DNA from: Gekko japonicus
Taxonomy: Eukaryota
Reading direction: 5' to 3'
Assembly (NCBI RefSeq): GCF_001447785.1
Contig: NW_015175976.1
Location: forward strand, 777,486 to 841,485
DNA length: 64,000 nucleotides
Below the pieces are notes generated by a model. The model saw only the letters and a list, made by a program, of their open reading frames with translations, made no database searches and was not told the DNA's origin. Both the position numbers and the translations under genes were made by a program. This document shows positions 1,487-62,267 of the stretch, piece by piece. Positions within the stretch are counted from its first letter, which is position 1. Every line of letters starts with the position of its first letter.

Positions 1487-1669
1487 GTATTGGTGGCGGA
1501 ATCATTCACCAAAACGAATTGATCCACGGGAGTTCTTTTTGTGCTGCCGAGCTCGGGCACATCATGGTAGCCTTGGATGGTCCAGAGTGCCTTTGTGGGA
1601 GCCACGGCTGTATAGAAGCCTATGCTTCTGGAATAGCCTTGCAGAGAGAAGCTAAGAAACTGCACGACG
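1487..1669 (+). CDS. GNE: GNE coding exon (ManNAc kinase/ROK domain; antepenultimate coding exon)
   Basis: ttacag|GT acceptor, GACG|gtagga donor, 183 nt. Encodes [49 protein letters not shown], with the ROK zinc motif ELGH..CxCGxxGCxE. Confidence 0.96.
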
Positions 1670-2336
1670 GTAGGACCAGAATTGTTCTTCACATTTATTT
1701 CCAGGATGCAAATGGAACCAATGGGAAAGCTATGAGAATGGGACCAATGGGGGGGGGTGGAATCTTTAGCACTCCAGCTTAAATAACTGTAGAGCTGGAA
1801 TACCCCTTAACACTGTGCTCTTAAGGAGAAAATCACAGGAATTCTTTCCAAAGCACTTTGTTCTGATACATGTGTGCTGCCAGTGGCTAAGTCAGTGCAG
1901 AGCATTTCAAAGAGCTGGTCTAGATGCGTACTCAGAGAAGATATGCACCAGGCAGGCACTCTGATGAAGAATGTGCAACTCTGAGGAGACCGGGGGAGGG
2001 ACTCTTTCTGCAGTCCAGAAGAACTGCATTCTCATCCCTGTTCCATGAGACATCACATGGATGCTGTAGACGGAACATAGAGGCTGGCTCTCAGGAGTAA
2101 ATAGGTGGGGACTTGCCAGCCTGAGTAGACTCACTGAATAGGGTTGCTCCGGAATTGCTCCTATATTTTACAGGTTAAAAAAACTTCCAGTTTCAAGTTT
2201 GACGTTTTTGTTGCTTCCCTGATTCTTCCTGGTACCTTATAATGCAAAATTAGAGTTGCCCTTAATGTATATAATGTAGATGTGGACCATTCATTTTCTT
2301 TTCTTTTTGGTATTTTTTTTTCCCCATTTCGTGTGT

Positions 2337-2540
2337 GGCCGTGCCTGAAAATCATGGCGACCTCTGGCGATGCCTACTGGGGCACGGAGGATGTTCAGAG
2401 AAGTGGCTTGATAGCCTTACCCTGCCTCCCGGCCTTTGTATTCTTTGGAGGTCTCCCATCTAAGTACTTGCCAGGGTTGGCCCTGCTTAGCTTCCGAGAC
2501 CTGACGAGATTGGGCTTGCCTGGGCTATCCAAGTCAGGGC
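2337..2540 (-). mobile_element. 5S rRNA-headed SINE (5S-Sauria-like)
   Basis: Reverse complement gcccaatctcgtcaggtctcggaagctaagcagggccaaccctggcaagtacttagatgggagacc is close to 5S rRNA. Near-duplicate at 46922-47121. Confidence 0.75.
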
Positions 2541-3813
2541 GGTCATTCATTTTCTGTCTTTTTTCTTAAATCCCAAGTACCTGTACAGAGCCACACAAAA
2601 GCCAGTCCTTGCCAGATATAAGAGACCCCGTTAGGCCTTGAACAACTTCCAAGGTCCCCTTGCCTCTCTGTAGGAGGTCTCGCCCTCCTGCTGGATGATG
2701 TTTGCATGAGGTGTTCAGGAGACACAGCAGAGGGGGGGACCTTGGAGAACTGCTGCAGGTCAGCATTGTGTAGTAGTGGTTAGAGTTTTGAACTAGGATC
2801 TGAGAGTCCCAGATTTGAATCCCCACTCTGCCATGGGAGCTTGCTGGGTGACCCTGAGCCAGTCATACTTTCCCTCTCCAGCTGTCCCAAGCCCCAGTCT
2901 GACATTAACCCCTACACCACACTTTATGAGATCATATATGTTTGAGTAACTGTATTGGTTAAATTCTTGCCATTTTCCAAGTCTTCTGAGGGCTTCATTT
3001 TCACAGTGAACCTTTTGACTGTAGCTAATTGCAAAGCCTCAATGGCATACCTTGTAACTTGTTGATATTCTGCCTAAATCACGCCACTTTATAGTAGAAT
3101 TGGTGTTGTCAGTGGTCATTGGAAGGCAGCTGTCCTTTAACTGGTGCAGGGGAGAAGGAAACGACAATGGAAAGAAAATCTGTAGAACAGGAAGGAAGGC
3201 TGTGATCAGAGGCTGCGAGAAGAAACTGGCTGAGTCCATCGGAAAGACACACTGATCTGGGATGTGACATGCAGCCTTGGCTATCTTGCTGTTTTCCTGT
3301 GATACTTCTGCATGTTGAGTGACTCCACACTCAGTAGATCAGTGGGATAGCCCACCAAAAGTGAATTTAGAGCTTGGGAGGGTGATCCTATCCTACCACT
3401 CTGCTGAGCAAGGTTTATGAAACTTTTAATATATGTCTTCATTTATGTCCTTTCTTATTGGCTCAAGTTCGAAGTCTTTCTACCATCTAAGGAACCTTCC
3501 TCCAACTCAGATGGATCTTCTGTTGGAGAAGCACCACTTGGAAAATCTCCTTAGGCTGCAGAAAGGCAACTTTGAGGATGGTTGGATCCACCCCACTGTC
3601 TGTATACATTGCAACAACATAGTTAATAGTCTGGTTCCACTGTCCACCTCAGGTCCTGTATGTGAAAGTTATAAGCCTGAACTTCCTTCTTTTTGAATGG
3701 TTGGCTGAAAGTGGCAAAGCATCAGTCTGCTCAATGGTATTTTTTTCCTGTTTTAACTGCTTGTTCACCACTACCGTGTTTCTTCCTCCCACCCCCTGCT
3801 TCATCCCAAACAG

Positions 3814-3930
3814 AGGATTCATTGTTAGTGGAAGGGATGTCTGTAAAGAAGGAAGAGACGGTAACTGCCGCACATCTCATTCAGGCAGCTAAACTGGGAA
3901 ATCCAAAAGCTGAGCACATCGTTAGAACCG
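3814..3930 (+). CDS. GNE: GNE penultimate coding exon
   Basis: aaacag|AG acceptor, ACCG|gtaagg donor, 117 nt, phase-compatible with neighbours. Encodes (E)[38 protein letters not shown]. Confidence 0.95.
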
Positions 3931-4157
3931 GTAAGGGAAGCTGAGATCAGTCAGAACTCTTTCTTAGAATCCCATCTAGTGATAAAAGCTGTGTTGCAGA
4001 TCTTGTTGTTCAGAGGGCATCATCCACATTCACAGCATTTTACAGAGCCATATTAGCAAGAAAACAAAAAAAGCCTTGCACGAGGGAACTTAAATTTTAA
4101 GTTTTGCTATTACAGAGGCTAGAGGGGGAACTTAAGAGTTGAAGCTAGATAGGACGC

Positions 4158-4330: not shown

Positions 4331-5417
4331 CACACAAGAGAATGCATTTAGAAACTCAGTTTTTGTTTCAAGGGGAAGCGAGTCCATAGTTTCCTTGGGT
4401 GTATGCAGAGGCATGCTTGCTGCTGGAAAGTTGGCTCTGTCCAAAGCAATGTTCAGACATTTTACAGACAATGTAGGGGAGGCCATTGTTGCTTGGGGGG
4501 CATGTCCTGATGGTTGTTTCCTGTGCTCTTTGCTGGATCCTCTTAACATCAGCCCCACCCACAAAGCATATGTCCTTTTAGGACTGAATTGATGTATACA
4601 AGGGATCTAATTGGAGAGATACCAGTGGGCAAGGAGCAGTATTTGTTAAGCCTTGGGCAAGCAGCCATGTACCATAGGGGAAGGCAAGGCTGTCCCTTAG
4701 ACTTTCACTAGCTAATATGGCTTGAAAGAGGATTCCTTCCTGATCCCAGATCATATACGTGAAGAGCTTCCCTCCAGCTAGTGTAAGGCCTTACAAGAAT
4801 ACAGATGTGGGTTCCTTCCTGTAAGTCACCAGCACTATGCTGAGAGACTTTACAGCTTTACTTGGAAACTGGGTGGGGGGAATTCCTTCTTCTTTTACCT
4901 CTTTGTTCTAGAGAAACTGTTGGAGAAATTCCATAGATAGAAGCTTTTTATCTCTCCTTGCCCACACATGTCCCTGCTGTGCTTTTAATGATTTAACAAT
5001 TAGAACATCTCTATTTACTAAGCAAGTAAAACCAACAGGTGGCAAAATGTTCTCTGTAAAGATGGGATTTGCCCAGGGAATCAAAACTCTTTTCACCACG
5101 CTGTTTGAGCTGTTCTGTACTGTTTTCTGGGAGAACTTTCCTTTTGGCTATTTGTAAGTGGCATGAGAGGATCTTGGTTGCTCGTGGTATGGTATGCTTG
5201 TCCTGTTGTTTTCCCTGGTAAACAAGCTCAGTTGATTTCTGCAGCATTTTGGTTGCCTGCAAAATGTGTCTGACCAAAGATGACAGTGGGGCAAAATAAA
5301 TGTCTTTCTACATATACAATAGCAACGCTACCTCTGTTTTTTCTGACTCCCCTGAAAAGCTGTTGTCTCTTTTATAGCCTTTATTGTCCCTAACTCTCTT
5401 CCCTGTTTTCTGCACAG

Positions 5418-5653
5418 CGGGAACCGCTCTGGGCCTTGGAGTCGTGAACATTCTGCATACCATCAACCCCTCACTTGTGATCCTTTCTGGCGTCTTAGCA
5501 AGTCACTACGTCAACGTTGTCAAAGATGTGATCCATCAGCGGGCCTTGTTCTCCGTGCAGACGGTGGATGTGGTCGTTTCGGACCTCGTGGATCCCGCCT
5601 TGTTGGGGGCTGCCAGCATGGTCCTGGATTATACCACACGCAGGGTATATTAG
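5418..5653 (+). CDS. GNE: GNE last coding exon
   Basis: tgcacag|CG acceptor. Encodes [31 protein letters not shown]...LDYTTRRVY then TAG, matching the GNE C-terminus. Confidence 0.97.
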
Positions 5654-8851: not shown

Positions 8852-8857
8852 AATAAA
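8852..8857 (+). terminator. Probable GNE polyadenylation signal (implies ~3.2 kb 3' UTR)
   Basis: AATAAA preceded by TGTA motifs and followed by a GT/T-rich downstream element (ggtttcatggttttttgtacgctttgtgtc). Confidence 0.55.
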
Positions 8858-17638: not shown

Positions 17639-17810
17639 TCAGCGAACCAGCGGAGCCTGCTTGAGCGAAATCAGCACGGAGCGCATGCGGGAGACATCCT
17701 TCGCCTGCTTACTCGACTTGGGGTTAAAGTCACAGAGCCGAGCCACGCGTTCCCACTCGGTGCCCGGGGAGGACTCGTCAACATCGTTCACAAAGGCTTC
17801 TTCAGCTGCC
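17639..17810 (-). CDS. CLTA: CLTA exon 7 (last coding exon)
   Basis: ttttag|G acceptor. Encodes AAEEAFVNDVDESSPGTEWERVARLCDFNPKSSKQAKDVSRMRSVLISLKQAPLVR then TGA. Confidence 0.97.
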
Positions 17811-20588: not shown

Positions 20589-20642
20589 ACATAACCAATC
20601 ACGTCAGCGGAGGGTTGTTTGTAGAAAGCTTCATCTGCCACC
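20589..20642 (-). CDS. CLTA: CLTA exon 5 (54-nt neuronal alternative exon)
   Basis: cctag|GGTGGCAGATGAAGCTTTCTAC...GGTTATGT|gtatgt; encodes VADEAFYKQPSADVIGYV, the 18-aa insert. Confidence 0.94.
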
Positions 20643-24230: not shown

Positions 24231-24342
24231 CTATTGTTAGCTTTTGTTTTCTGTAGCTGTTCATCCTGTCTCGCATACCATTCTTCCAACTCTTTTATTG
24301 CCTTCTCTTTCCATTCTCCTTCTTGTTTTCGAGAGTTTGCAT
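24231..24342 (-). CDS. CLTA: CLTA exon 4
   Basis: ttcag|AT acceptor, AG|gtaagg donor, 112 nt. Encodes DANSRKQEGEWKEKAIKELEEWYARQDEQLQKTKANNR. Confidence 0.96.
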
Positions 24343-25903: not shown

Positions 25904-26021
25904 CGAGAACTTCTAGGCGCTCCAGTTGTTCTTCTCTCCATTTGCGGATGCTCTCCGGTTCTGTCTGCAGACGATCAGCTTGCGAAATCGCACTGTAACA
26001 GTCTGTTGGACCGTTGCTCTC
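25904..26021 (-). CDS. CLTA: CLTA exon 3
   Basis: ttaag|GA acceptor, G|gtgaga donor, 118 nt. Encodes ESNGPTDCYSAISQADRLQTEPESIRKWREEQLERLEVL. Confidence 0.96.
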
Positions 26022-40127: not shown

Positions 40128-40539
40128 AGGGTCACCCTAAGTCAGCTGTGACTTGATGGCCCTTTCCACCACCACCATTACAGGATGAAGCACTACAGCC
40201 CATTCTACCACCTCAGAGTCCTATGTGCTTATACTCTTGCATTCAGTCCTGATTTGCAACGAGAAGAGAATAAGGTGGTAAATTGTAAAAGGGACAGACT
40301 GGCCTCTACCACTTTACGCTGCATGTCCTAAAGCCCCCCCCCCCAATAATTCCTTGCAAGAGGAAAACTAGCACAGAATACTACAAAGTACAAACTAAGC
40401 TTACAATCCCTCTCGCATAGGTACTATTTTTCAACCTTTTTAGATGGGGGAGCGTGAAAAAGGTGCCCCCCTCCCACCCGCAGTCAGAAGCAGCAAAGCC
40501 CATTCTGCCCTCCCCCAGTTCCCAGAATTGTTGCAAAGA

Positions 40540-41650
40540 TATACCGAGGAGCCCTGTAGACTAGGCCGAAGGGAACCGAGGCAGCTAGCGGCGACCTGCT
40601 GAAGGCCAAACTAGCCAATTTGTGGCGGAGTCGACCTTCGTGCCAGGGGCTTCCTGGCCTGCCTCTCGCGCGAACCCGCTAACGGGAAGGGTCCCGGGGC
40701 TTCATATGGACTTGAAAGTCCTCGGCGTGCCGAGGCAGGGGAGTCGCTCCGCTGCCTAGAGTGCGTTGGCTGCTACTCCCCCACCATCACGTGAAAAAGC
40801 AGACGTGTGAACCCGCTCACCCTCACCCGGAGACAGCCCCTCGGGGCCCTGCAGCCCCGCCGGCACCTCGCCGTTCTCCAGGATGTTGTAGCCTTCGTCA
40901 TTTTCGATGCCCGCGATCTCGTTCTCCTGCTGGGCCAGGAAGGCGGCGGCCGGGTCCTCTTCGCCGCCGCCCAGCGTCCCGTTGCCCGCCGGCTGGGGCG
41001 CGCCGAACAGATCGAACTCGGCCATGGGCGAAAAGGAACGGGGGGGCGGAGCCAACCGAAGTAACGGCCGCGGGCGAACGAGGAAAGGCAGCGCTCGAGG
41101 CGGAACCAGCCGTTCAACGGTTCCTGAGGAGGAGGCGACAGCGGCTACTACTTCCGGCCTCCGCGCGGAGCTCGCTCAGCCCGTCAAACCTTTCCCTCCG
41201 CCCTTTTACCCGCACGTCCCCGGAAAGTTCTCTGAGCGACGGCAAGAACCCGCCAACCAAATGGGGACAGGAGGGCGTCCGCGAGCCAGTCGTCACCCGG
41301 GGGAGGCGGGCTTTCTAATACACGCTGTCGAACCAACGTGACTTCTCTTCTCCCCCTCCCTTCCTCTTCTCTCTGCGTGCGCCGAAGAAGCGCCGTGGCC
41401 AATCAGCACCCTTCCCCCCCCTCGCTTGGGGGGGGGCGTGGCATGGATAGGTCGCGTGCGGCAGAGTCAATGAATTGAAGAGTCCCGCACAGGCAGGGAT
41501 TTAGTTCTGTACACCGTTGGGGGAGTCCGACGTGGTTGGGAAACGCGCGCATCCCGGAAAAGGGCAGCATTAGCCGAACTCACACGTGCCACGTTGAAGG
41601 CGCTTTGTAGCCTTGCACGCCCTTTCGGAGGGCACGTGTGAAAAACAGGC
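40540..41650 (-). promoter_or_regulatory. CLTA CpG-island promoter
   Basis: CpG-dense. ETS CCGGAAGT (41150-41157, minus), CCAAT at 41399, GC box ~41434, CACGTG E-boxes at 41583 and 41633. Confidence 0.8.
40827..41025 (-). CDS. CLTA: CLTA exon 1 coding part
   Basis: ATG at 41025. Encodes MAEFDLFGAPQPAGNGTLGGGEEDPAAAFLAQQENEIAGIENDEG..., containing the conserved light-chain consensus segment; donor G|gtgagg. Spliced CDS is 242 aa with exons 5+6, 212 aa without. Confidence 0.97.
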
Positions 41651-43783
41651 AGGTTTAACTGCATGAGTTGTCGGAGCCTTGTTCACCTTACAGTGAACAT
41701 CTTGCCTCTGTTGCGTATGCATCTGTTTGTAATCGCCCACAGCCTATAGTGTCAAAATAAAACCGGAGGACCAGTGCCTGGATAAATGGAGGTTTTAAAT
41801 TCCAGGTTCGAGCTGTGTGTGGAATGTCACGTGGGAAGTACTCGGTGCCTCAACACAGGAAAAAACAATTGGACAGCACTTTATGTGGGTTGTTGGTGTG
41901 CCCACTCCTAATTTGCATAGGGCTGTTTTTGCAGTATGGAAAACAGAAAGATGGTGTAAGGTCTCTCTTAATCTTCATATTGAATAAAATTCTCTTTGTG
42001 GACCGTCATTACAGGTGTGGCATTATCACTCCTTCATGTGGCCTGGAAACCCCTTGTCTTTGCTGAATCCAGTCATGAGCATGTGGGGATAATATATTTG
42101 CCTGTATTATTGTAATCTTATGTCAACAGATGCTGCCATGGGTGATGCCAGGATTTGCCTGTCCTCCAGGACTGTCGGAGCCAAAAAAGCCAGACTCATG
42201 AAGTCGCCTGTTAGGAAGAGATTAAAATATGTGTACAGGAAGTTCAACGGCCACTTTCGGCTTAGTCTGGGTTTGTACATGAGGCAGAAGGAGGTGAGAA
42301 CAGTGTCTGAGGGAGCAGAACAACCTTCAGGAGGCTGCTGGGAGCACCAGATTTGAATGCTCACCTGTGTGGGGAAAAAATACAAGCAAAAAAACTAGGC
42401 CAGCAGTTTCTGGCTCTGGGTAGGTCCATTCTTTAGGCACACCTAGGAGACTGCCTAGGATGCCAGAGGTGATGGGGTGCCAAGAGCAGCCTTGTCACTG
42501 CCTCATCCTCCTGCAGTCTTTTCCCAGTACTGTTTTTGCCTCCCAGTTTGCCCCTGTCAAGCAGTGTCGGACCTCCCCAAGCCACAGCCCCTGGCCAGTG
42601 GGGACAGTTTCCCTGTGGCATGGGACAGGGATGGGAAAAGTCATGTACTTAGGGCACCAAAAACCCTAGGGCTAGTCCTGATCTGGTCCAGCCCCCCTTT
42701 CGCCCTGATGTCATGCTTTTCTGCTTGCAAGGTGTTTATGAAATGCCCTCTTGCTGTCTGAAATGGGACAGTCTTAACCTACCACTGAGACTGTGCCACC
42801 ACTCTGGCACTTCATTCTTCTGGAAGGGTAGATCTACCCTAAGAATGTGTACATAAGAAAAGATTTCTCGGGACTTGGATGCGGTGGATGTGTTCGTTTT
42901 CCGCATTGTCTTTTGGTCAGATTGGTTTTGCAGGTTTTTGTAGGACTTTGAGCTAAAACCTGGAAGCCGTATGTAAAAGGATCACATAGTCATGCGCCCC
43001 AGCATGGTGTAATGGTTAGAGTGTTGATCTCAGAGACCCAGGTCCTCTGTCCTGGAGGCTTCCTAGGTGACCTTGCGCCAGTCACACACTCTCAGCCTAA
43101 CCTACCTCACAGGATTGTTCTTGTGAGGATAAAATGGAGGATAATGTTGCAGAATTTGGGGTTATGTGAGCCTGGGCCTTTGTGTTCTTCTATGCTATGT
43201 AAGTTTTGCTCTAACTGACTTTGGTTTCTTGGTTCTGAAGTCCCATGAGACTTTGTTTTTTTGCTGTCAGCCTAGGCATAAAACTGAGGGCCTTGCCCTG
43301 TAAATGCACTCTTGCCTGAATTCGTATCTGACATTCCCCGTTCTCCAAGTGCCAGGCTCCAACCCTAAACATATACCGCTGTGGAGATGCCATAGCTGTC
43401 TGGGTCTTGCTAACATCGCAGTTAATAAAATATATCTAGGCAAAAGTTCACCCTAGCAAACGGTGTTATCACCATACGGTGGGCTAGCCTAGTACATTCC
43501 GGATTGACGCCTCCATTGGTTCCTATAGACTGGAAAGGGTATAAAAATGTGGCTTTGGGCTTTGTTCTGGACTGTTCGGCCAATCCCCCACCGGTGTGCA
43601 TAAGGGTCTTTGTCCTGCAGTCCAGGAATGTTCCTTGTGCGTCCTAAAAGTGTACACTGTATCAGCTATTGATTGACTTTTATATGTTATTGAGTATTAC
43701 TTGTGTATGGCTTCATCAAAGAGTTACAGTTTGCGTTTTAAGCTGTTGTTCTCTCTGGGTCTTTCTATCCTGGTTCCCTAGAA

Positions 43784-44929: not shown

Positions 44930-45563
44930 CTTATGGCTGAAAACTAATAAGTAACCCACTTGTTACTCTCAGACAACTTTCAATCCAAATGGCTGAGAGC
45001 AGTTCATAATAAATTATATGAGCTTGGTTTTTCCCCCCAAGCGATTTTGAGTATGCATTGGGATGTAGCAAAATCAGCCCTAAAACAGAGAATGATGGAC
45101 ATGGAGAGACAGACAGATCTCAGTAGATGTCCTAAGTTTAGAGCCCCAGATTCTGTCAAATATCGCTTGCAACCCATGTCCTATTTATCACAGCTTGATA
45201 CNNNNNNNNNNNNNNNNNNNNNNNNNNNNNNNNNNNNNNNNNNNNNNNNNNNNNNNNNNNNNNNNNNNNNNNNNNNNNNNNNNNNNNNNNNNATTGTTAA
45301 TTGATGGGAACCGGACAATTACCGAAACTGTGGCAAAATTTTGGGTAGCATGCTACTGCATCCGAAATACACGATCAAATATATAATAATAGTTGCCTAA
45401 TAGTCTCTGTTTTATGTTCTTCTTTTACTTTATTACGCTCAACTGTATTTTTATAGAGTTTTATTTTACTGTCCTAAATTCAGTTATATGAATGTTATAT
45501 TTAAGCATGTGTGTTCTATAGCTTGTTGCCGTAATAAATGCCTGACTGACTGACTGACTGACT
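44930..45563 (+). mobile_element. LINE 3' end (clade uncertain, RTE-X/L2-like) spanning an assembly gap
   Basis: Open frame SKWLRAVHNKLYELGF...AKSALKQRMMDMERQTDL...YLSQLD continuing after the gap; ends in AATAAA plus (TGAC)n tail. Confidence 0.55.
45202..45292. other. Assembly gap (91 N)
   Basis: Run of N. Confidence 1.
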
Positions 45564-48484: not shown

Positions 48485-50287
<1,803 letters not shown>

Positions 50288-50608: not shown

Positions 50609-51061
50609 TAGGGTTGCCAACCCCCCCAGTTTGCCAGGGGTCCCCCGTTTTGGGGGGGTTCTACCCGCCGCCGGCCAGATGGCCAGCGGGAGAAGCCCCA
50701 CCCCCAACACCCACAGCCACCCCTCTCTCTCCCTTTAAGTGTGTGGAACCCGTGTTTCCTCCCAAGCCTGTGTTTCCTCCCAAGCCCGATCTCCGCTTGT
50801 CGCAGGGAAATGCCAGCTTCGTGCATTAAAAAGGGAAACACAGCTGCTCTTAAAGGGGAAACGCCGGCTCCTGCTCTTAAAGGGGAAACGCCGGCTCCTT
50901 TAAGTGCAGGGAACTGCCATTTCTGGAGATCCGGCACACGGGCGTGGGAGGGGGGCGGCAGACGTCCCCAACGTGACGTCATCATGTCGGGATGCCCCGC
51001 CCCCTCCAGGAACACCCCCAAAGTCCCCCGCTGGGGGTGGAAGATGGACTTGGCAACCCTA
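50609..51061. mobile_element. Young CpG-rich hAT MITE (453 bp) with internal tandem repeats
   Basis: TIR tagggttgccaa/ttggcaacccta; perfect 8-bp TSD ctccatga; internal duplications gtgtttcctcccaagcc x2 and gctcttaaaggggaaacgccggctcct x2. Confidence 0.9.
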
Positions 51062-51315
51062 CTCCATGATGGAGTGAGCGCTAACACACAAAACCTTATT
51101 CTGGAATTTATTTTGTTAGCCTTTAAGGTCCTACTGGATCCTGTTCAAGTCTACTGACTAGTGTGTGTTCGGCCCCCCACCCCACCCCTATTCTTCTTTC
51201 TAAAAAATGTTAGGCTTTACAAAAGACTCCTTTTAGCAATATGCTTTACTGATGGTCATTTTGGAATGCATTCTGGTACAATTTATTAGGTTAAGCCTGC
51301 ATAGGAAACCTGAGC

Positions 51316-51484
51316 TGGATGGCCCAGGCTAGCCTGATTTTGTCAGATTCTTGGAAGCTACGCAAGGTTGGTCCTGGTTACTACTTGGATGAGAGACCAC
51401 CAAGGAAGCTGAGGGTTGCTACAGAGAGGCAGGCAGTGGCAAACCACCTCTGCCTGTCTCTTGTTTTGAAGACCCTATGGGGTT
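51316..51484 (+). mobile_element. 5S rRNA-headed SINE
   Basis: ggaagctacgcaaggttggtcctggttactacttggatgagagaccacc (5S-like) plus ggcaaaccacctct tail. Confidence 0.72.
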
Positions 51485-51489
51485 AGAAA

Positions 51490-52070
51490 TATAGAAACAT
51501 AGAGCTGGAAGTACCCTCCAAGGTCATCGAGTCGAACTCCCTACACTATGCAGGAAATTCGCAACGACCTCTCTCCCCCATTCCCCTCCCCCCCCACACA
51601 CACACACTCTATGCCCAGAGGAAGGCCAAAAACCTCTATGATCCCTGGGGCAATCTGGCCTGGAGGAAAATTCCTTCCTGATCCCTGGGCATATAAGAAA
51701 GGGCCATGAAAGCCAAGCTCTGGCTCATCCTTTTCTGCCCCCCCCCCCCTCATATCTGCCTAAGTTCACAGAATCAGCATTGCTGTCAGATGGCCATCTA
51801 GCCTCTGCTTAAAAATGTTCAAAGAAGGAGAGCTCACCACATCCTGAGGAAGCTTGTTCCACTGAGGAACCACTCTAATGTCAGGAAGTTCTTCCTCATG
51901 TTCAGCTGAAAGCTCTTTTGATCTAATTTCAATCAGTAGGTTCTCGTTCGACCTTCTGGGGCAACAGAAAACAACTCCACTCTTTATCCTCTGTATGACA
52001 GCCCTTCAAATAATTGAAGAGCACCCTCAGATCACCTCTCAGTCGCCTCCTCTCCAGGCGACAGGACAGC
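51490..52070 (-). mobile_element. CR1 LINE 3' fragment
   Basis: Translates LERRRLRGDLRVLFNYLKGCH (CR1 ORF2 C-terminus) with the CR1 3' end at ~51490. Confidence 0.85.
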
Positions 52071-54405
52071 ACTTTCCACCACCACATAGGAAACAGCTTA
52101 TAAATTATTTTGTTCTCGTGGTCAAACTGTACTGGCAGCTGCAGCAGTAATGGGGAAACCAGGCAAGCCTGTCCCTGTGTGGAAAACCCCTTCGTATCTG
52201 TGGTTTCATAATGCCAGAAGGGAGGGAACATGTCATTTGTGTGACTTAATTTTTAAAAATCGCCTTTACAGAGTTACCTGAGCAATACCGACAGGTCCCG
52301 GCCCCCAAGGAGCTTACAAACTGAAAGAGATGGGGGGGGGGGGGGGGAGAACTGAGAGAGGGGAAATGGTGAAGAAATGCCATTACAAAAGATCCCCAAA
52401 TGACACAGGATTGAGAGAAGGGCCTTGAACTGGATAGCAAATGTGGGGAAAGGGTAACAAGAACCTGACCCTGGCTCTCTGCAAGGCGGACTGGTAGCGA
52501 GGGTGCCTTTGGGGAAGAGGCAGGGAGGGCGCATTGTCCCTCTTTGGTCTTCAGGCTCCCCATGTGATGGATCCTTAAGGGCTCTAAAAATCCATATTTC
52601 TAGCCCAGTCTTGGTTCTTCACCCTGTGTTACAAACAAGAGTATTTGCAAGTTAAAGATGGGTGGGACCTCTTATTGTTTTGAAGATAAACAGTGTACAC
52701 AGGTATACCACCTCATTCTGATGCTTTCAACATTTTCTTCCAGCTCTGCTGATTTCTGGTATTGGAGTCAGGCTGGGAGCAAAACCCTTAAGGTGACAGA
52801 GCGCCTGATACGGTGTAAGACAGGGCAGGGTACAACGCTCCTTGACCATACACTGTTATTGTGAAAATAGCTGACCCTCACACACTATTTAGATAGCAAT
52901 GGATGTACTAAAGATTTACATAGATTTCCCCCCCAGTCATGCATGGTCCCAGAACCATGGTTGGCTTCCTAATTTGCCAAGCAGATGTCATACATACCTG
53001 TCTACCCACCCACCCACCGGCCTCAGCCCTGGTACCTTAAAAAAAACAACCACAAGCAGCACACTACTATATAGGGTTGCCAACCTCCAGGTGGTGGCTG
53101 GAGATCTCCTGAGATTACAACTGATCTCCAGGCAACAGAGATCAGTTCACCTGGAGAAAATGGCTGCTTTGAAAGGTGGACCCTATGGCATGGTGCCCCA
53201 TTGAAGTCCTTCTCCAGACACCACCCTCCTCAGGCTCCACCCCTCAAATCTCAAGGTATTTCCCAACCCAGAGCTGGCAACCCTCTCAGGCATTCTGAAA
53301 ACACTGTCCAAGACTTGCCTTTGAAACATTATAGTTTACCCAGACTGATGGTGTTACTCCATATATGATTGATCCTACTCACTTTCCCAACTGTAAACCC
53401 ACCAAAGCTTTAAGAGGCCTTGACGGCCGGCTTGGAAGATAGGGTTGCCAAATGGCCTGGAGAAAAATGGCCCATACATTTAATACAGTCTCGGTGTGTG
53501 GAAATGGGCAGTGGAACCTTTCCATGGCATGGAGGCAAACAACATCACCATGTAAATAACATCCCATTAAGCCTCTGTTAAATGAACAGGACAGTTTTCT
53601 CCAGGAATGTTATCAACACTGGAAAAGAGTAGATGGAGTCTCTGTCCCCCTCATCCTTCAGTGTCCCTAATATTATGAACATCAGTCATATCCCCCTTGG
53701 TCAGAGATCCCCAGTATGGTGTTGATGGATACCACAGGGCCCATGTTTTTCCTGCTGCCCATTTCTTTATTCTTCAAAGCAGAGACCCAGTCCGACCCAG
53801 TCTGACTTTCTTCTACCTCACTGAACTTAAGGTGTTTCAGAAGAGCTATGAACACATTACTTTTGTCTCCAAGGAACATCCACTTGGAAACTGCTATGTC
53901 TATCACAGGAGGTTGCTTCACTTGGAACTTCCCAACATTTTATGACTGGCCCCAGTCCTCATGGCCACCATGTTGTGATTAGGAAAGACCTCCTCTCAGG
54001 TCAGAGATCCCTGTTATTGGTCATGTTTTGCTAAACTCAAAAGCTCCCAACACTGTGCTCTTTCTTTGTAGAAAAAAATGCTTCAACTTCTTGATCATGT
54101 TGATTTGACTTTTTAAATACAGACGATCGCTTACAGCTCAACCTGATCTATTTTTACTTGGAAGTACATCCCATTCATATGAAGGGGATGTACTCCCAAA
54201 TAAGGGTCTGCAGGGATAGTGGCGGTATCTTTTTCTAAATTAACTTGTTTCCTTTCACCTTTCTGTGTGTAAGTACACAGGGTAGCGCTTTAACTTCCTG
54301 AAGCCCAGCGCAGGCAAAATCAGAATCCTGTAGGAGGAAGAGAGGTTGCTTTTGCAGCTGATTCATCCTCCAGATGTTCTAATTTTCTTGTCACAGTAAT
54401 GTCCC

Positions 54406-55135
54406 TGTAATGATTCCTTGTTTTAGAGTGTGTGTGTCTCTTTAAATATTTGGTTGCAGTGCAGTGAATGCAGAGTAGAGTGATTGAGAGAGACAAGTGT
54501 GGTGTGATTGGAGGATGACAGTGTGGGAGGAGTTGTTCTGTGTGGATCTGTGTGGATGTCAGTCAATTATGAAAGTCAGTTAGAGAAAGCAGTTGGAGTT
54601 TGGAGTTGGTGTCAGAGTCAGTGAGTAAGCTGACAGTGTCTGTGTGGAAAATAAAGAATTTAGAGATGAGCACCGCAACCCTAGAGTCTGATTCGACTGG
54701 CTTTCGAGCAAGGGAACCTTTACCTATATATGTCTTAAAAAGTGAGACTCTAAAGATCTGGAAGGAAGTCAAAATTACCAAGAGCTTAGCCTGTGTGGCT
54801 GCCTATAGGAAAGAGGGACTGAGTGTGTGATACATTTGCCAGACATATTTACAAGTCCCTTATTCCCAAACAGCTACAGATAAACCAGCCTCATATTTTG
54901 TTCTTATTTCAATAAATCATCTTTTGTTCAAGTTTATCCTAGAATTCAGTTCTATCTTTCCTCAGGACCACATAGATCCCTGAAAAGCCTAGACTATGGG
55001 TCACATTACCAGCAGCAGAGGAGAGAAGGTTTGGAACTCCTTAAATTCCTGATGGCAGCAGAAACTACCCAGTTTACAAAAGCAAAGAACACATATAAAG
55101 TGAAAAGCAGTCCTCCCAAATAAGAGGATGCCACA
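54406..55135 (+). mobile_element. Solo LTR (730 bp)
   Basis: Starts TGTAA, ends CCACA; perfect 5-bp TSD GTCCC (54401-54405, 55136-55140); AATAAA at 54911. Confidence 0.75.
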
Positions 55136-57325
55136 GTCCCCCTTAACAATAGGGCAATTACTAAACATGTTTGATGTTTGCCTTCCAGCCACATAGTCTA
55201 TGCACAGCAACATGTCAATCCACAGAGTAGAATACAGGTAATAACACAGAATGTCCCACAAACAGGGCTGTCAACTGACCAGGGGAAATGCCACAACTGC
55301 TCCTACACCTTTAAGAGCAGCCAGATCTTATGTCAGTAGGAGAGGCATGTCAAGATTAAGCCCTGTTCTTTCAGCCCTGGCAGCTTTACTTTCCCCTGCA
55401 TGTTTAGCTACCCTGGCCCCAATTCCCTCTCCTACTTGGTTCTTACACAAACAGGCCTGTCCCCCATTGGCACCTAAGTTTCGTGTCCAACATCAGTTGT
55501 TTTGGTTGTGAATTTAACTCTCAGGCGCACGACTGATTCTGGGTACTTTTTGGAAATTCAGAACATCTCAGGTTTTAATATCTGCATGATTTCTTTAAAG
55601 AGTCGAAGACATTCTTTTTAACCTGTTCTGGCAGCCATGCATTAAGCTGCCAACTACTTTTAAAATTGCCCTTTACTATTAGCAGCAGAAATTAAACACA
55701 TGAACTGTTCTATTTGATAAATGTAAAACTAGAACTGCCTCTGCTCTTACGTTTTCCTCCACAACTTGCCATACTGTCAGCTCGCTGCCATAGGAGCTGT
55801 GGTGGGGGAAGGGATTCCTTGGAATGTGACTTTCGCTTTCCTGCTGTCTGGGTGATGCTCCCTTATCTGTATAGCTTATGTGTTTGACCTTGGTTCTTGC
55901 CTGTAACATTATCTGCTGGGAAGGGGGGGGCATTGAAGCCATTAGATTCTGGTGGGCCCCGCTTTTGCCTTGATTGGCTCTTGGCTGCCTTGTGCCCTCC
56001 TTTGCCCCGTGCTTTGTAGCTCAGTCTTAACATAGTTCCTGAAGTAGCGACGTTCTGCCAATACTGATCAATAAACTTCCTTTCTAAAGAAGCAAGTCAT
56101 TCTGATTGTTGCAGGAGTCTGACACATACAGACAGCTGGCTATGTACATATTGTGTAGTGGGAGCCGCATGGATGCACGTACAGACAGCTGGCTATATAC
56201 ACATGTGCCGTCAAGTCGCAAGCAACTTATGGTACCCCAACAACGGGCTTTCAAGGCAAGTGAGCAGAGGTGGTTTGCCACTGCCTTTCTCTGCAGAGTC
56301 TTCCTTGGTCATTCCCCAGCCAAATACCGACCCTGCTTAGCTTCTGAGATCAGGCTAACCCAAGCCACCTTTCCTCCTGATTGTTAGCAGGTAAAGGCAT
56401 TTCTTATCACTCTCAGGTTGTCAGCTTTTAGATTGGTCCCTCTTTAGCATCAGTTCAATCTGCAACAGTTACCAGGTGAAAAGGTTCCAAGTGCCCAGTT
56501 CTGCATATAAAATCTCTATTAAAGGGACATTCCCCCCCCTGAAATGCCAGGAGCAGCATTGTCTGCTTTTACTTACCTGGCTCCTATCTAATCTCTTACA
56601 TACCAGCACTGATCTTGCCAGGTATTAGCTGGTGATGATGCTCCTTTCCATGACATGCAGTTTTTCTACCCTAGCTGAGATCGGGCTGTTATTAAAGGCA
56701 CAGGAACAGATCGGACTGACTTTTTACTGACCAGCCGGCAACTCTGGATAGGGATTTTTAAAATGATATGTGACTAGTGATAATGGGCAGGGTTTTTTTA
56801 ATGAAGGGTTGTTTGTTTGTTTTTAAATACAAGCATTCCCCATTTGAAAGAACAGTTATTCTACTCTTGTGGAATGGAACCGAACCGGATTCCTTTTCAA
56901 TCACAAGAGAAAGACTCTCAGGTTTTTGGAAGTAGATTCCCCCTTCTAGCACTGCACTTTTCCAAACACTTACTCTGCACCTTTGATTTGGGATATATAA
57001 CATGGTATGTATCCAAATACCTAACATTTAGTGACTAGTCACAACTGGAAGTAAGCTGCAAGTAGGGTGGACTGTGGGAATGGGAATTAGAAGGCGTTCC
57101 CTTGGTGAAGGAGGGGAACAGGAAACATTTGGCTTTTGTTTTATAGCTCAGTAAAAAGTTTAATAAAAAGCAATTAAAACATTTACATATTTTTGGCATC
57201 TCTTTTGTGTATATAGGCAGGGAAATGATGAACTAAACCTGCAATCTTTGCTCTCCTCCATTCCCAAATGCCCAGATATATAGATTTCTCCATGAAACAC
57301 ACCATAAAAAAAGATGATTCAGCTG

Positions 57326-58254
57326 GCATTACAATATGACACACAACTTAATAGAACTTATAAACCAAGGTACAACGTCGTCTCCAATTAAAGGGACCTT
57401 GCAAATTGCTAACAGGTGGTGGGTAGTGGGAGGCAGTACACTTTAAAGAAAACCTCATGTAGTTTACACAAACATAATATAGTTTACAAAAAACATCATA
57501 TGATTGACAAAAAACATGAAAGGTCAATTTCTGCATTCAGTCCATTAGGAAATACACTGTTCAACCGGTAAATCCAAAACATCTCTCGCTGTAAGAGGCG
57601 TCTTCTTAAGTCAGTCCTTTCTCCAGGAGTTCTCTGTACAATTTCTAATACAACATATTGAAAGCTATCATAACAATGATTAAGCTGTTTAAAGTGAATT
57701 GCTAATGGGGTATCCAGGTTCTGAGCCTTCAGTTTGGATTTATGCTCTGTAATTCTTGTTCTGATAGGTCTAGAAGGAGACCCAATATAAATTTTTTCAC
57801 ACACACATTTTAATTGCCCTCTGGTAACATGCACCAGAGAGAGATGCCTAGGATCCAGAAAAAAAACAATACTGCGTGTTAATTGAGATCAGCGTCCTAT
57901 CTGAATCGTGATGTGAGTTATTACTAGGCTGATTAGTTGTAATTTGAAATATTTTGAACTATCTTATATGTGTTCATAACAAAGATAAAATTATTATGTT
58001 GCAGATGCTTAATACTTGTTGTCTAGCTTTTATGAAAATGAGAGCTTTGGCACCTCTATGTAAGTCAGCAATAAGATTATTGTATTGTCTCTTGTTTCTT
58101 GTGATTGGTGTTATACATATTCTAAAAATGGCATGTTTGTGTACTACAGAAAATTTCCTGAAGATTCATTTTTTGAAACGTTGGTAAATAATCCGGAGAC
58201 GACGTTGTACCTTGGTTTATAAATTCTATTAAGTTGTGTATCATATTGTAATGC
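57326..58254 (-). mobile_element. Penelope-like element fragment with GIY-YIG endonuclease remnant and inverted terminal segments
   Basis: ORF 57496-57834: CxCxKIYIG..R..RITEH...HF...H...LE...LLQREMFWIYRL...PNGLN. 60-bp inverted repeat 57326-57385 / 58195-58254 with 2 mismatches. Confidence 0.85.
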
Positions 58255-59589
58255 TTCAGAGCACAATACATGTACAGCAATTCTTATAAGTCGTATGACT
58301 GTTGATTGTGGGTCAGACTAACACGACTGTTGACCTTATATTTGTTTATCTGGGTCTGGAAGTGGCCACCACACAAATTGCCCAGGTGGGGCTCAGGGTG
58401 GCCCAGCATGTAGTTTCCCCAGGATGGACTGGGCAGCAGCATCCCTTTGTCTGGCTGCTGCTTGTAGTCATCAATCAGCGGCCTGACAGGTCTCCTTTCC
58501 ACTACTCTGCAGCTGGGTGAACCGAGGTGTGGAGGCTGAAGGAGATGCAGCCCTTCTTCCTAAAGCTGCCGGCCCACTGGGACTTTTTCTGGGGATCATA
58601 ATGGCCCATTCAGCACAAGCTTTTGCAGACGACAGACGACCTCTTGGGATGGTATCACTGCCGTTGAGTAAGTGGGCTCTCTCTCACCGAGGAAGACCAG
58701 GGTCGCTATACCTTTATTTATTTATATCCCACCCTTCCTGCATGCAGGCTCAGGGCAGGTTACAACATATAAAACTCACAACAATAAAACCCAACTCTAA
58801 TACTATCAAATCACTACCCCTTAAAACAAGATGACATTCTGAAAAACCATTTCCCAGGGTCCCGGCACAGTATAGCAATAGGGAGAGGATAGAGTCTATA
58901 AATTCTTTTCTGATGACACAGTTCATTGCTCTTAGAAAGATCCACAGCGGGCATTTTAGTCCAGTGGCCCAACAGTCTACAGCAGATTCTGGCTATTAGC
59001 AAACCACCTCTGTTCATCTCTTGCCTTGCCATGGAAAAACCCATGAGGGGTTGCCCTAGGTCTGTCCTTGCCAAAACCCATGAGGGGTTGCCCTAGGTCT
59101 GTTGCGACTTGAGGGCACTTTATTATTATGTTAAGAATGGTCACAGTCAGATAGTTGACTGGTAGATGGTGTTCTGCAATTCCAGACCTAGCCAAGTTCT
59201 TGCGAATTGCAGGGGTGTCTCCGCAGGATTCTTGATGTTCCAAGCTGAGCTGGTGTTATTTACTTGGTGCCCAGAATGTCCAGGTGTTTTGTGAGACTTC
59301 TAGACACTGCTCCAGTGACAACTAGCACGATGGTCACCTTCTCATTATTATTACCATTGGACTCCAGGACAGGAAAGCTTTGCTGGAATACCATTTTGTT
59401 AACGTGCCAACGGTGCCATAGATTTTTTTTTTATGTACAGGAAGAGTGCATCTGGCTAGCAATCCTCTCTGCCTCAGAGCATACCTATTAAGAAGTAAAA
59501 GATTTTGTTGAGCTTCCGCTTCCTTCTTTCACAATAAGCTATTGTTGGCTTTACAGCTAAGGGGGGGGAAATGCACGCAAATTCCCTGC

Positions 59590-60300
59590 CACGTTGCTTA
59601 AAATCACACGACGATATTCGGCAAACGACGTCTTAAGAAGTAAAACTAGTCTGGGCGTCACCTCTAGAACGCTCCGCAGTAAACGCCCCGCAGGGCCAAT
59701 TTTTAGGTTCTCTTTCCCGGCGGCCTAGGGCTGACCTTAGAGCGTGAGCGCCACCTCCTGGCCTGGCACTCTGCGACAGATCGGACGTTGATTGGCCACC
59801 TGATCCCGCTAGCCTCTCTTCGATTGGCCAAATTGAGCCCTCAGCTTCATCGGTGGATGGAGGGAAGGAATGACGGTGCCGTCCAAAAGGCTCGTCGGCA
59901 CGCTCTTCGCGCGCATGCGCGAAGGGAAAGGCGTGTGTCTAGAGGCGACTGCCGTGAGAGCGGTCTGGTTTGGTTCGCACTCGCTGCTTCCGGGTTTTGT
60001 TTTGTTTTTTGCCTTTCTTCTCTCCTCCCCACCGGGTCAATCTTCTAACCTTCGTCCGCGATGCCGTTGGAGTTCGAATTGTGCCCGGGCCGGCTGATCG
60101 GCGGGGACCACCCTTGCTTTATTATCGCCGAGATTGGGCAGAACCACCAGGGAGACCTCGAGATCGCCAAGCGGATGATTCGCGTGGCCAAGGTGGGGTT
60201 TCCTATCTAAGCGCGGCGATGGTCAGAATCGGGTGGGGAATGGCGGGATGTGTTTGTCCTTTTTACTTGCCTCGGGGTTTGGGTGGGTGAATGAATGGAT
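59590..60300 (+). promoter_or_regulatory. NANS CpG-island promoter
   Basis: Two inverted CCAAT boxes (ATTGG at 59791 and 59823), NRF1 palindrome GCGCATGCGC 59911-59920, ETS CTTCCGG at 59987. Confidence 0.8.
60061..60192 (+). CDS. NANS: NANS (sialic acid / Neu5Ac-9-phosphate synthase) exon 1
   Basis: Encodes MPLEFELCPGRLIGGDHPCFIIAEIGQNHQGDLEIAKRMIRVAK; donor AAG|gtgggg; 132 nt. Confidence 0.96.
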
Positions 60301-61623
60301 CCCGGGGAGCTTTCGGTTAGAGCAGGGGGTCTCGGTCTCAGGCTGTGTCCCATATTCATTTACGGGGCTGTGATTTTTGCAGTGTCGTTGGGGGAGCCCG
60401 TTCCCCTCGCCCTCCCCGTCCTTTCCCTGTAATTAATTTTGTATCCTTTTGTGGCCAGGAGGTGGCTGACCTAATGTATGTTTATACATTTTTAGCTTAC
60501 TCCCCTTACATACTCCCTGCTCATTTTATCCTTGCAACAACCTGTTAGGGAAATTAATTAAGTAATTGTGGTATGGCAGTGGTCGTCGAATAATAGAGTT
60601 GGAAGGGACCTCCAGGGTCATTTAATCCAATCCCCTGCACAATGCAGGGAGTTCACAAATACCTCCCGCTCCACACCCCCATTGTAGTATAGCCAAGAGA
60701 TCCAAGGTTGTCTGGCAACCTGGAATTCCAGCTGTTCTTTGTGGTGAGCTAGGTTTTTGGGCTGAGAGAACTGTGACTGACCCAAGGTCACCCAGCTGGC
60801 TTCAAGTGGAGGAGTGGGGAATCAAACCCGGTTCTCCAGACTAGAGTCTGCAGCTCTTAACCACTGCACCAAACTGGCTCTCTCCTGTTAGGGAGCTGAG
60901 ACTGTGACTGGCCCGAGGTCACCTGGTGAGCTTCCTAGCTTCAACGAGACTCGAACCTGTAACTTGCCGGTCTTCAGTTGACACTCTAACTGCTAAACCC
61001 TGTGCAAATGTAGTAAATAAGCAACTCTGGGCTGCAAGTTCAGTGGATTGTCTTTAGAGGTTGATACCACTGATGGCTTTAACTCATTTGTGGGCTGGGT
61101 TGCACGGGACACATGGAAAGAGGAACTCTCTCCTGCACTGTCTCTTGTTTCTGTGGTTATACGTTTTGGGTGATGCCTCTGATGAAGTGGTGGGCTCTGG
61201 CCTGCAAAAGCTTGGCACTCAACAAATGTGCTAATCTTTAAGGTGTCATGGGACTTTTCATCCCTCATCTTGGTGTAGTAAATTCAAGTGGGGGTGAGGT
61301 GTCGAAAGCGACATAGTACACTTTATGCAGAGTAATCCAAGTAGCGCACAGAGTAATTCAAGTAACACAACACAGTGTGCAAGCTTTTGATATTAAAAAC
61401 ACAAAGGGATGGGGGAAGAGAAACCCTTCTTTCAGAGCATGGTATTAAGGCCTGATGAAGAGTTCTGGAGAACCCAAAAGCTTGTCGTGTTCTTTGGTTG
61501 GGCTGAATGAAAGGCGTTACATCCGTTTTGGATTTTGCGATGGACTGATCCAGCTGCCTGCTTCTTTGTGTGCAGTGTTCTGTTTGTTGGCCTTAGCCTT
61601 GTGTGACGGTTGTGTCTCAACAG

Positions 61624-61839
61624 GAGTGTGGAGCAGATTGTGCCAAGTTCCAGAAAAGCGAACTGGAGCACAAGTTCAACAAGAGAGCCTTGGAGAGGCC
61701 CTACACGTCCAAACACTCGTGGGGGGAAACGTACGGAGAGCACAAGCGCCACCTGGAGTTCAGCCATGACCAGTACAGGGAGCTGCAGCGCTACGCCAAG
61801 GAGATTGGCATTTTTTTCACCGCCTCTGGCATGGATGAG
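61624..61839 (+). CDS. NANS: NANS exon 2
   Basis: aacag|GAG acceptor, GAG|gtaagt donor, 216 nt. Encodes ECGADCAKFQKSELEHKFNKRALERPY...FFTASGMDE. Confidence 0.97.
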
Positions 61840-62167
61840 GTAAGTGCGAAGCGGGTTTGGAGGGTGTTTGAAAAGAAGCCGCTAATTGTGAAGTGAGGCG
61901 ACTGTCTGGTGGGGATACAGCGTCTCTGTTCTAGTATGACCACTGGATCTCTAGAGAGAGCTTCCTCAGAACATCTGCTTCCTCACTGTTGGGACTACCA
62001 CCATCTCTGTTTCGCCCACGTTCTGACCGGCTGAATCACCTAGTGAGGAACACAAATGGGAGTTCCTGAACCCCTTAATGAAAGGGGGTTGACTTTCACA
62101 GTTGTGATTGTCAGTGTTAGGGTTTTGTTTTTTAAAAAAAAATCTCTCTCTCTCTCTCTCTCTCTAG

Positions 62168-62267
62168 ATGGCTGTGGAATTCCTGCATGAACTAGATGTT
62201 CCATTTTTTAAAGTAGGATCAGGAGACACAAACAATTTCCCCTACTTGGAAAAGACAGCAAAAAAAG
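62168..62267 (+). CDS. NANS: NANS exon 3 (gene continues beyond the window)
   Basis: tctag|ATG acceptor, AAAG|gtaagt donor, 100 nt. Encodes MAVEFLHELDVPFFKVGSGDTNNFPYLEKTAKK. Confidence 0.96.

Follow-up and report, generated by a model that had tools for sequence, protein, structure and literature searches.

GNE and NANS, which encode consecutive enzymes of sialic acid synthesis, lie close together in Gekko japonicus as part of a GNE-CLTA-CCIN-NANS block that is best explained as passive conserved synteny, an inherited gene order in which the enzymes are linked by descent rather than by shared control (rough probability 0.78). The window, that is, the whole stretch of 64,000 nucleotides analysed, carries GNE (+), CLTA (-), CCIN (-) and NANS (+) in that order, with GNE and NANS 54,407 bases apart. 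The earlier note had described the two genes as co-oriented, with the GNE stop at 5653, the NANS ATG at 60061 and only CLTA and CCIN between them, and every one of these coordinates stands. The features are collected in Table 1.

Table 1. Coordinates, strands and supporting evidence of the features located in the window.
Feature	Position	Strand	Evidence
GNE antepenultimate exon (kinase domain)	1487..1669	+	AG 1485-1486; GT 1670-1671; Pfam ROK E 3.2e-16; solved GNE kinase domain E 4.8e-32
GNE penultimate exon	3814..3930	+	AG 3812-3813; GT 3931-3932; split codons fit both neighbours; 0 Pfam families, piece too short for Pfam
GNE last coding exon	5418..5653	+	AG 5416-5417; stop TAG 5651-5653; solved GNE kinase domain E 2.2e-36
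CLTA last coding exon	17639..17810	-	stop TGA 17641-17639; Pfam Clathrin_lg_ch E 2.7e-19, profile 163-220 of 222
CLTA alternative exon, 36 bases, 12 residues	18930..18965	-	AG/GT borders; phases fit preceding and last exon
CLTA exon	20589..20642	-	splice sites and phases; 17 codons, too short for search
CLTA exon	24231..24342	-	Pfam Clathrin_lg_ch E 5.7e-6
CLTA exon	25904..26021	-	Pfam Clathrin_lg_ch E 2.2e-5
CpG island at CLTA start	40401..41800		GC 0.55-0.68; CpG observed/expected 0.73-1.12 (500-base windows)
CLTA first coding exon	40867..41025	-	ATG 41025-41023; solved clathrin light chains E 1.6e-8; 3' border uncertain
Assembly gap, 91 N	45202..45292		between CLTA and CCIN, outside exons; flanks are high-copy repeat
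CCIN (calicin) single exon	48485..50260	-	591 codons and stop; BTB/BACK/Kelch
CpG island at NANS start	59501..60400		GC 0.55-0.59; CpG observed/expected 1.01-1.12
NANS exon 1, coding part	60061..60192	+	ATG 60061; matches Gekko japonicus sialic acid synthase P0313 at 44/44 residues; no Pfam match (44 aa)
NANS exon 2	61624..61839	+	Pfam NeuB E 2e-13
NANS exon 3	62168..62267	+	Pfam NeuB E 1.1e-6

The identity of the two enzyme genes was established from their exons at either end of the window. The last three exons of GNE are present and the rest is cut off by the window start, the N-terminal UDP-GlcNAc 2-epimerase half being upstream of the first base. The exons seen encode the C-terminal ROK-type ManNAc kinase domain and belong to the ROK family by Pfam. 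Compared with solved kinases, they matched GNE itself far better than the runner-up (E 1.8e-11), and the alignment of the last exon reached the final residue of the solved GNE kinase domain chain. NANS contributes its first three exons, and the remainder, including the C-terminal SAF/antifreeze-like domain, lies beyond the last base. Its exon 2 matched 574 representative proteins at E<=0.001 and the exon borders agreed with database proteins. Both the NeuB domain and orthology to the vertebrate sialic acid synthase identify the gene as Neu5Ac-9-phosphate synthase. As had been claimed, GNE and NANS are non-homologous, the former consisting of ROK-family and the latter of NeuB-family exons.

CLTA is complete in the window, running on the minus strand from the ATG at 41025 to the stop at 17641-17639. 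All four exon pieces searched matched PF01086, in the profile order 14-43, 77-121, 126-160 and 163-220, the first exon with E 0.004 and 17.6 bits, which is under the cut-off of 22. The donor after 40867 is the sole canonical one in phase with the next exon; donors after 40827 and 40821 are stronger but do not fit its phase. The matches to solved chains were labelled light chain B or carried no paralogue label, and Atlas returned nothing on paralogue A versus B. We named the gene as paralogue A because it adjoins GNE, as in chicken and sheep, and because of its 12-residue alternative exon, presumably the neuron-specific insert that is specific to light chain A.

CCIN forms one unbroken frame, identical over 591 aa (100%) to P0404, the database entry of the window itself, with matches to Pfam BTB (E 2.6e-22), BACK (E 1.9e-12) and Kelch (E 2.2e-26). 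It shares 93% identity with Heteronotia calicin and 62-66% with mammalian calicins. No further coding gene was recognisable between GNE and NANS when 507 stop-free pieces from the three intergenic stretches and the CLTA span were compared with Pfam, a scan that exons of <40-58 aa could escape. Apart from five matches at chance level (E 0.005-0.01), the scan picked up only a fragment of a reverse transcriptase and the exon of CLTA itself.

The linkage recurs well beyond this gecko. Among squamates, CCIN and NANS were found on one contig in all 21 other species whose CCIN and NANS rows both state contig size, including species with scaffolds as small as 259 kb (Ophiophagus), 322 kb (Protobothrops) and 473 kb (Python). 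RefSeq numbers, whose distance is a noisy proxy for gene adjacency, differed by 1-3 in nine of the 14 squamates with comparable numbers and by 31-812 in the remaining five, still on the same contig; in Naja naja the two locus tags are consecutive. CCIN and a NANS-like gene are consecutively numbered on one chromosome in axolotl, and the numbers are separated by 3,897 in Pleurodeles and 2,266 in Microcaecilia, each on one contig. The table for chicken Z gives the order RNF38, LOC101752070, TRIM14, NANS, CLTA, GNE, in which NANS, CLTA and GNE are consecutive, NANS and GNE are 37 kb apart, and RNF38 and TRIM14 stand beside the block (PMC4974732). In catfish, clta, gne and nansa fall inside +/-150 kb of one SNP. 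The fish gne-clta-nans adjacency mentioned in the earlier note is therefore upheld as proximity within 300 kb, adjacency itself not being given by the alphabetical gene list, which has no order.

Distant lineages with independent assemblies thus share this microsynteny, and its recurrence in squamates, chicken, axolotl and catfish bears out the ancestral-linkage half of the original idea for bony vertebrates at least. In all four rays, a calicin-like gene and NANS are on separate chromosomes, and the CCIN-NANS junction can therefore not be extended to jawed vertebrates as a whole.

The arrangement differs in mammals. In sheep, RNF38, GNE, CLTA, CCIN, GLIPR2, a LOC gene and RECK are found within 230 kb, with NANS absent (PMC8883713); in this eutherian, GLIPR2 rather than NANS follows CCIN, the arrangement that the earlier note gave for human. 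The proposal that the cluster was broken in mammals fits the sheep cut after CCIN and is too strong for cattle, in which GNE and NANS are still at most 8.2 Mb apart, and for three marsupials, in which the CCIN and NANS accession numbers are 18-158 apart on one chromosome.

From this distribution we infer that a common ancestor already had GNE, CLTA, CCIN and NANS side by side and that the order was simply retained. By parsimony over gecko, chicken, axolotl and catfish, the block would date at least to the bony vertebrate ancestor. It would belong to a larger, old group of linked genes that chicken Z has in common with human chromosome 9. The cut between CCIN and NANS would then have occurred in the line to therian mammals, apparently without harm. 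Every gene would be driven by its own promoter.

The alternative that survives best is that of a selected metabolic mini-cluster, in which non-mammals keep GNE and NANS in one chromatin domain with common enhancers and co-tuned flux. We consider this unlikely, even though the two genes encode consecutive, non-homologous enzymes on the same strand and their linkage, found in squamates, chicken, axolotl and catfish, predates the split of tetrapods and ray-finned fish. The a priori chance of this one pair falling within three genes is 3e-4; given 1000-1500 consecutive-enzyme pairs, chance alone would yield 0.3-0.45 such cases per genome. The promoters speak against a joint unit. The GNE promoter lies before the window start and hence >60 kb from that of NANS, CLTA and NANS have separate CpG islands, CCIN has none in 500-base windows, and no shared or bidirectional promoter for GNE and NANS was found. 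Metabolic gene clusters consist of directly adjacent genes, usually three or more; here there are two pathway genes, separated by the unrelated CLTA and CCIN on the opposite strand.

The history of the neighbourhood points the same way. Other genes of the region were kept as well: a complexin gene near GNE in chicken and catfish alike, xpa, tmod1 and tdrd7a close to nansa (catfish), and, beside the chicken block, RNF38 and TRIM14. Because this wider neighbourhood is conserved too, the GNE-NANS pair is no better kept than its neighbours in this informal comparison of few species, an outcome that the earlier note had counted towards refuting its idea. In the same small and informal set, the sheep break falls exactly between the two enzymes, at CCIN/NANS, and leaves RNF38-GNE-CLTA-CCIN intact, which makes this the single link of the block to have been lost in mammals. 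Mammals nevertheless make sialic acid normally. The earlier idea of an ancestral vertebrate mini-cluster with shared regulation is thus retained for the old linkage, while the functional cluster is unsupported. The fuller version, by which the GNE-NANS link was maintained in non-mammals as one co-tuned regulatory domain, perhaps of pre-vertebrate age and dating from the origin of the animal pathway, and was lost in mammals in favour of control in trans, appears slightly less probable still.

A further alternative is that the pair is a relic of a pre-vertebrate sialic-acid gene linkage like bacterial neuC-neuB, into which CLTA and CCIN were inserted later. In bacteria neuB and neuC share one operon and the epimerase half of GNE resembles NeuC; in the window, the NANS exons belong to the NeuB family and the kinase part of GNE has matches among bacterial ManNAc kinases (E about 1e-7). 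The separation of the calicin-like gene and NANS in rays argues against such a relic, and it would be exceptional for a link between two genes to outlast over a billion years of rearrangement in eukaryotes, which makes this origin improbable.

The GNE-NANS linkage is no assembly artefact. The repeat around the gap at 45202-45292 is covered at 20-50x single-copy depth, no short read and no listed contig piece crosses the gap, and the continuity of CLTA and CCIN over it, which is not read-bridged, is accepted because sheep has the identical CLTA-CCIN order. The open frame entering the gap has no Pfam family match, and the reading frame across it is therefore irrelevant. A misjoin, at the gap or elsewhere, or an arrangement private to this gecko has next to no probability, since the unbridged gap in repeat is outweighed by the matching order in sheep, by identical neighbours in 21 squamates, chicken and axolotl, all assembled independently, and by the absence of any gap in the CCIN/NANS junction (50261-60060), the one that is unlike mammals.

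Passive retention remains the preferred reading, and as it stands the block neatly illustrates the conservation of gene order and helps to date the CCIN/NANS breakpoint to the mammalian stem. It also warns that genes of related function can become neighbours and stay so even though their linkage has no function. Were selection to maintain the link, this would be a rare animal gene neighbourhood based on a pathway, and the linked reptiles, birds and fish versus the unlinked mammals would offer glycobiologists a natural experiment on the coordination of sialic acid synthesis.

The closest known arrangements are those of other vertebrates. The chicken Z block has the same neighbours NANS, CLTA and GNE as gecko; its table lists no CCIN between NANS and CLTA, gives no strands and places RNF38 and TRIM14 on the NANS side (PMC4974732). 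The sheep RNF38-GNE-CLTA-CCIN-GLIPR2-RECK block has its GNE-CLTA-CCIN part in common with gecko (PMC8883713). The membership of both enzymes in one pathway goes unremarked in both PMC4974732 and PMC8883713. The gene order itself is already visible in public annotations, and a full-text literature search found no paper commenting on the GNE-NANS linkage.

Two systems of pathway neighbours provide a functional comparison. In bacterial neu operons, for example that of E. coli K1, neuB lies beside neuC, and the likeness consists in homologous chemistry (the NeuB family) and in genes for successive steps standing side by side. Those genes are directly adjacent and co-transcribed from one promoter, whereas the gecko genes are 54 kb apart, with their own promoters and two unrelated genes between them; the bacterial synthesis operon also has no kinase counterpart of the GNE half seen in the window. 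PPAT-PAICS, a head-to-head purine synthesis pair in vertebrates with a bidirectional promoter as its mechanism of co-regulation, resembles GNE and NANS as non-homologous enzymes of one animal pathway that have long been kept as neighbours. PPAT and PAICS share that promoter, whereas GNE and NANS face the same way and have their starts >60 kb apart.

The window carries the order GNE-CLTA-(CCIN)-NANS, an old gene block in which two enzymes of sialic acid synthesis lie together. Three exons with mutually consistent split codons occupy the first 5.7 kb of the plus strand and were assigned by their sequence to the 3' end of GNE. Against the solved human-type GNE kinase domain the first of them gave E 4.8e-32 and the last 2.2e-36, and the next-best solved kinases reached E 1.8e-11 at best. 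The epimerase half and the promoter of GNE are located before the first base of the window, while the remaining NANS exons fall past its end. Exons were searched singly, and NANS exon 2 gave no match to solved structures at E 0.001. The features are listed in the table.

Features of the gecko window, with the chicken positions of the corresponding block
Feature	Position	Strand	Evidence
GNE exon	1487-1669	+	AG/GT borders; ROK family by Pfam
GNE exon	3814-3930	+	AG/GT borders, split codons fitting adjoining exons
GNE last coding exon	5418-5653, TAG 5651-5653	+	ROK family by Pfam
Reverse-transcriptase fragment, 153 aa	10976-11434	-	Pfam E 6.6e-13
CLTA last exon	17810-17639	-	carries TGA 17641-17639
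CLTA alternative exon, 36 bases	18965-18930	-	clathrin light chain gene
CLTA exon	20642-20589	-	clathrin light chain gene
CLTA exon	24342-24231	-	clathrin light chain gene
CLTA exon	26021-25904	-	clathrin light chain gene
CLTA whole coding span	ATG 41025 to TGA 17641-17639	-	splice sites/phases and Pfam
5S-rRNA-like element	47011-47117	-	Rfam 45.9 bits, E 2.4e-6
CCIN	50260-48485	-	one uninterrupted frame; BTB, BACK, Kelch domains
Open frame, 112 aa	57499-57834	-	weak GIY-YIG, E 0.0033, below cut-off
NANS exon 1	60061-60192, ATG 60061	+	44/44 identity to Gekko japonicus sialic acid synthase
NANS exon 2	61624-61839	+	NeuB family by Pfam
NANS exon 3	62168-62267	+	NeuB family by Pfam
Chicken RNF38	Z 51,958,739-51,993,024		PMC4974732, excerpt
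Chicken TRIM14	Z 52,003,922-52,011,357		PMC4974732, excerpt
Chicken NANS	Z 52,013,130-52,022,024		PMC4974732, excerpt
Chicken CLTA	Z 52,040,355-52,055,158		PMC4974732, excerpt
Chicken GNE	Z 52,058,958-52,096,177		PMC4974732, excerpt

All four CLTA pieces searched matched the clathrin light chain family in Pfam, in the correct order. Solved structures gave no discrimination between CLTA and CLTB, and the best score of an Atlas search with CLTA was 0.84, to unrelated bacterial clusters. Exon 1 ends with two strong GT donors, after 40827 and 40821, both of phase 1, but the next exon begins in phase 0, and the sole phase-compatible donor is a weaker site after 40867. A search between exons 1 and 2 for a missing piece found no extra small exon, and the exon 1 donor is therefore uncertain. 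The mismatch (40821-41025 and 26021-26048, minus strand) may reflect a shorter gecko protein, a missed alternative exon or an error in GC-rich sequence.

The CCIN frame, 591 residues long, was 93% identical to calicin of the gecko Heteronotia. The 51 calicin relatives at E<=1e-20 included sturgeon, coelacanth, cartilaginous fishes, amphibians, reptiles and mammals, with no bird or teleost among them, and CCIN may have been lost in birds and teleosts. Two calicin-like proteins each were observed in Anolis carolinensis and Rhineura floridana (P0015/P0018 and P0011/P0019 being the two pairs); the Anolis pair lies on one chromosome and the Rhineura pair on different-sized contigs. The Kelch part of the gecko protein also gave a sub-threshold match to NANM, an N-acetylneuraminate epimerase (32.8 bits, cut-off 45), most likely a generic beta-propeller resemblance and an odd coincidence beside a sialic-acid gene.

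Gene lists from published genomes place the block well outside the gecko. On chicken chromosome Z (Gallus_gallus-5.0), the excerpt from PMC4974732 gives RNF38, LOC101752070, TRIM14, NANS, CLTA and GNE in sequence, and in that list no gene separates NANS from CLTA; successive NCBI gene numbers for TRIM14, NANS and CLTA appear in the excerpt from PMC10954189. In catfish, the relevant portion of PMC11760490 places clta, gne and nansa no more than 150 kb to either side of a single SNP on chromosome 29, in an interval that also holds xpa, tmod1, tdrd7a, spink4 and cplx2a. In the sheep interval OAR2 51.91-52.14 Mb, RNF38, GNE, CLTA, CCIN, GLIPR2, one LOC and RECK are listed in the excerpt from PMC8883713, and NANS is absent from that list.

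The proximity of CCIN and NANS was further assessed from protein records, by comparing accession numbers, locus tags and contig sizes as an indirect proxy in which small number distances are telling and large ones uninformative. Both genes were on equal-sized contigs in all 21 other squamate species for which both sizes were given, including small scaffolds in Ophiophagus (259,346 bases), Protobothrops (322,002) and Python (472,949). RefSeq numbers were 1-3 apart in 9 of the 14 squamates with one number series (Hemicordylus, Candoia, Pseudonaja, Crotalus tigris, Protobothrops, Paroedura, Podarcis raffonei, Lacerta agilis and Pantherophis, the last by its newer numbers and 14 apart by older ones), a distance with a chance of ~1.5e-4 per species if numbers were unrelated to position. 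In the other five the distance ranged from 31 to 812: Thamnophis 31 (with 400 for another pair in its rows), Varanus 54, Notechis 129, Elgaria 591 and Eublepharis 812. These counts leave out pairs from differing annotation releases (Python, Sarcophilus, Latimeria), and KAM-series GenBank numbers (Vipera, Liasis, Discoglossus, Sarcophilus) appear unrelated to position. Locus tags were consecutive in Naja naja, and the GenBank numbers of Ophiophagus differed by 4.

Outside the squamates, axolotl has three NANS-like genes, one of them numbered consecutively with CCIN on the same chromosome. Other species were less clear or pointed the other way: the numbers differed by 3,897 in Pleurodeles and 2,266 in Microcaecilia, each on one contig, and by 43,012 in Geotrypetes. 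In Callorhinchus the numbers were 18,046 apart on different-sized contigs, and in all four rays (Hypanus, Hemitrygon, Mobula birostris, Pristis) a calicin-like gene and NANS were on separate chromosomes. Salamanders have several NANS-like genes on the chromosome that carries CCIN, three each in Ambystoma and Pleurodeles, and two of the Ambystoma genes are numbered consecutively. Rays have two, whose numbers are consecutive in Hypanus. Such a pattern suggests local duplication of NANS in both groups.

By parsimony over gecko, other squamates, chicken, axolotl and catfish, the block was present in the bony-vertebrate ancestor. Since the calicin-like gene and NANS lie apart in rays, this dating is stated for bony vertebrates and may or may not extend to jawed vertebrates as a whole. 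The earlier note had proposed an ancestral vertebrate linkage of GNE and NANS, and this stands: it is old and reaches beyond one assembly, as far as the excerpted gene lists and the protein records extend. Its further claim, of a break in mammals, stands in part. In therians the break in the block falls between CCIN and NANS, where the excerpted sheep list has GLIPR2 beyond CCIN, yet cattle, by an excerpted source, keep both enzymes at most 8.2 Mb apart. In three marsupials CCIN and NANS, each time on one chromosome, are near and non-adjacent by accession-number distance (Gracilinanus 18, Sminthopsis 89, Phascolarctos 158). In human GNE lies at 9p13 and NANS at 9q22, and, given the mouse gene order, a single inversion, broken at one end between CCIN and NANS, would presumably yield the mammalian arrangement from that of reptiles.

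A working cluster under shared regulation, as had been suggested, fared poorly. CpG islands within the window were confined to the starts of CLTA (40401-41800) and NANS (59501-60400), and GNE starts beyond base 1, >60 kb from the NANS start. CLTA and CCIN, the two intervening genes, have no relation to the pathway and run opposite to both enzymes. The single mammalian break falls exactly between the two enzymes and leaves GNE-CLTA-CCIN intact, the opposite of what selection on a GNE-NANS link would give. The wider neighbourhood is also retained in the chicken and catfish excerpts. The a-priori chance for this pair is 3e-4, and 0.3-0.45 consecutive-enzyme neighbour pairs per genome are expected by chance. 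A regulatory reason for the link in non-mammals is improbable, and passive retention of neighbours is preferred.

A misjoin is least credible, since CLTA followed by CCIN across the one gap (91 N, 45202-45292, flanked by the start of CLTA and the end of CCIN, outside exons) is also the order in the excerpted sheep list (PMC8883713) and the CCIN-NANS junction (50261-60060) contains zero N, so that the gap matters little. Coverage was taken from two Logan contig sets and two raw-read runs under the same species label. Unique stretches had about single-copy depth in these sets, and the 400 bases on each side were 20-50x deeper, which places the gap in a dispersed repeat. Across these four runs none of the listed contig pieces and no short read bridged it, the flanks being high-copy repeat. 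The open frame running into the gap matched no Pfam family. The stretch 43784-44160 was also a multi-copy repeat by read coverage, and Rfam at gathering scores gave it no ribozyme family.

Stop-free pieces were compared with Pfam for CCIN-NANS (122, >=40 aa), GNE-CLTA (144, >=42 aa), CLTA-CCIN (109, >=40 aa) and the CLTA span (132, >=58 aa). Real matches were limited to the reverse-transcriptase fragment and CLTA's own exon; five further hits were weak (E 0.005-0.01: GIY-YIG, FAM163, DUF3432, CBFD_NFYB_HMF, Fer4_10). No CAP domain was detected between the genes of the window, and hence no sign of GLIPR2, in a scan that may miss short exons. The GIY-YIG frame, possibly a Penelope-like element, and the reverse-transcriptase fragment are transposon debris in intergenic DNA. 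The 5S-rRNA-like element, the sole Rfam entry at gathering scores, sits in sequence that each of the four runs covers very deeply, and it is probably a 5S-derived SINE.

Full-text searches found no paper noting the GNE/NANS/CLTA/CCIN linkage, and a sialylation-evolution review, in its excerpted part, names the enzymes and gives no gene positions. The order is already plain in public annotations. The finding is a case of conserved synteny in which two enzymes of the same pathway happen to be included. The bacterial neu operon and the PPAT-PAICS pair serve as comparison examples of neighbouring pathway genes.
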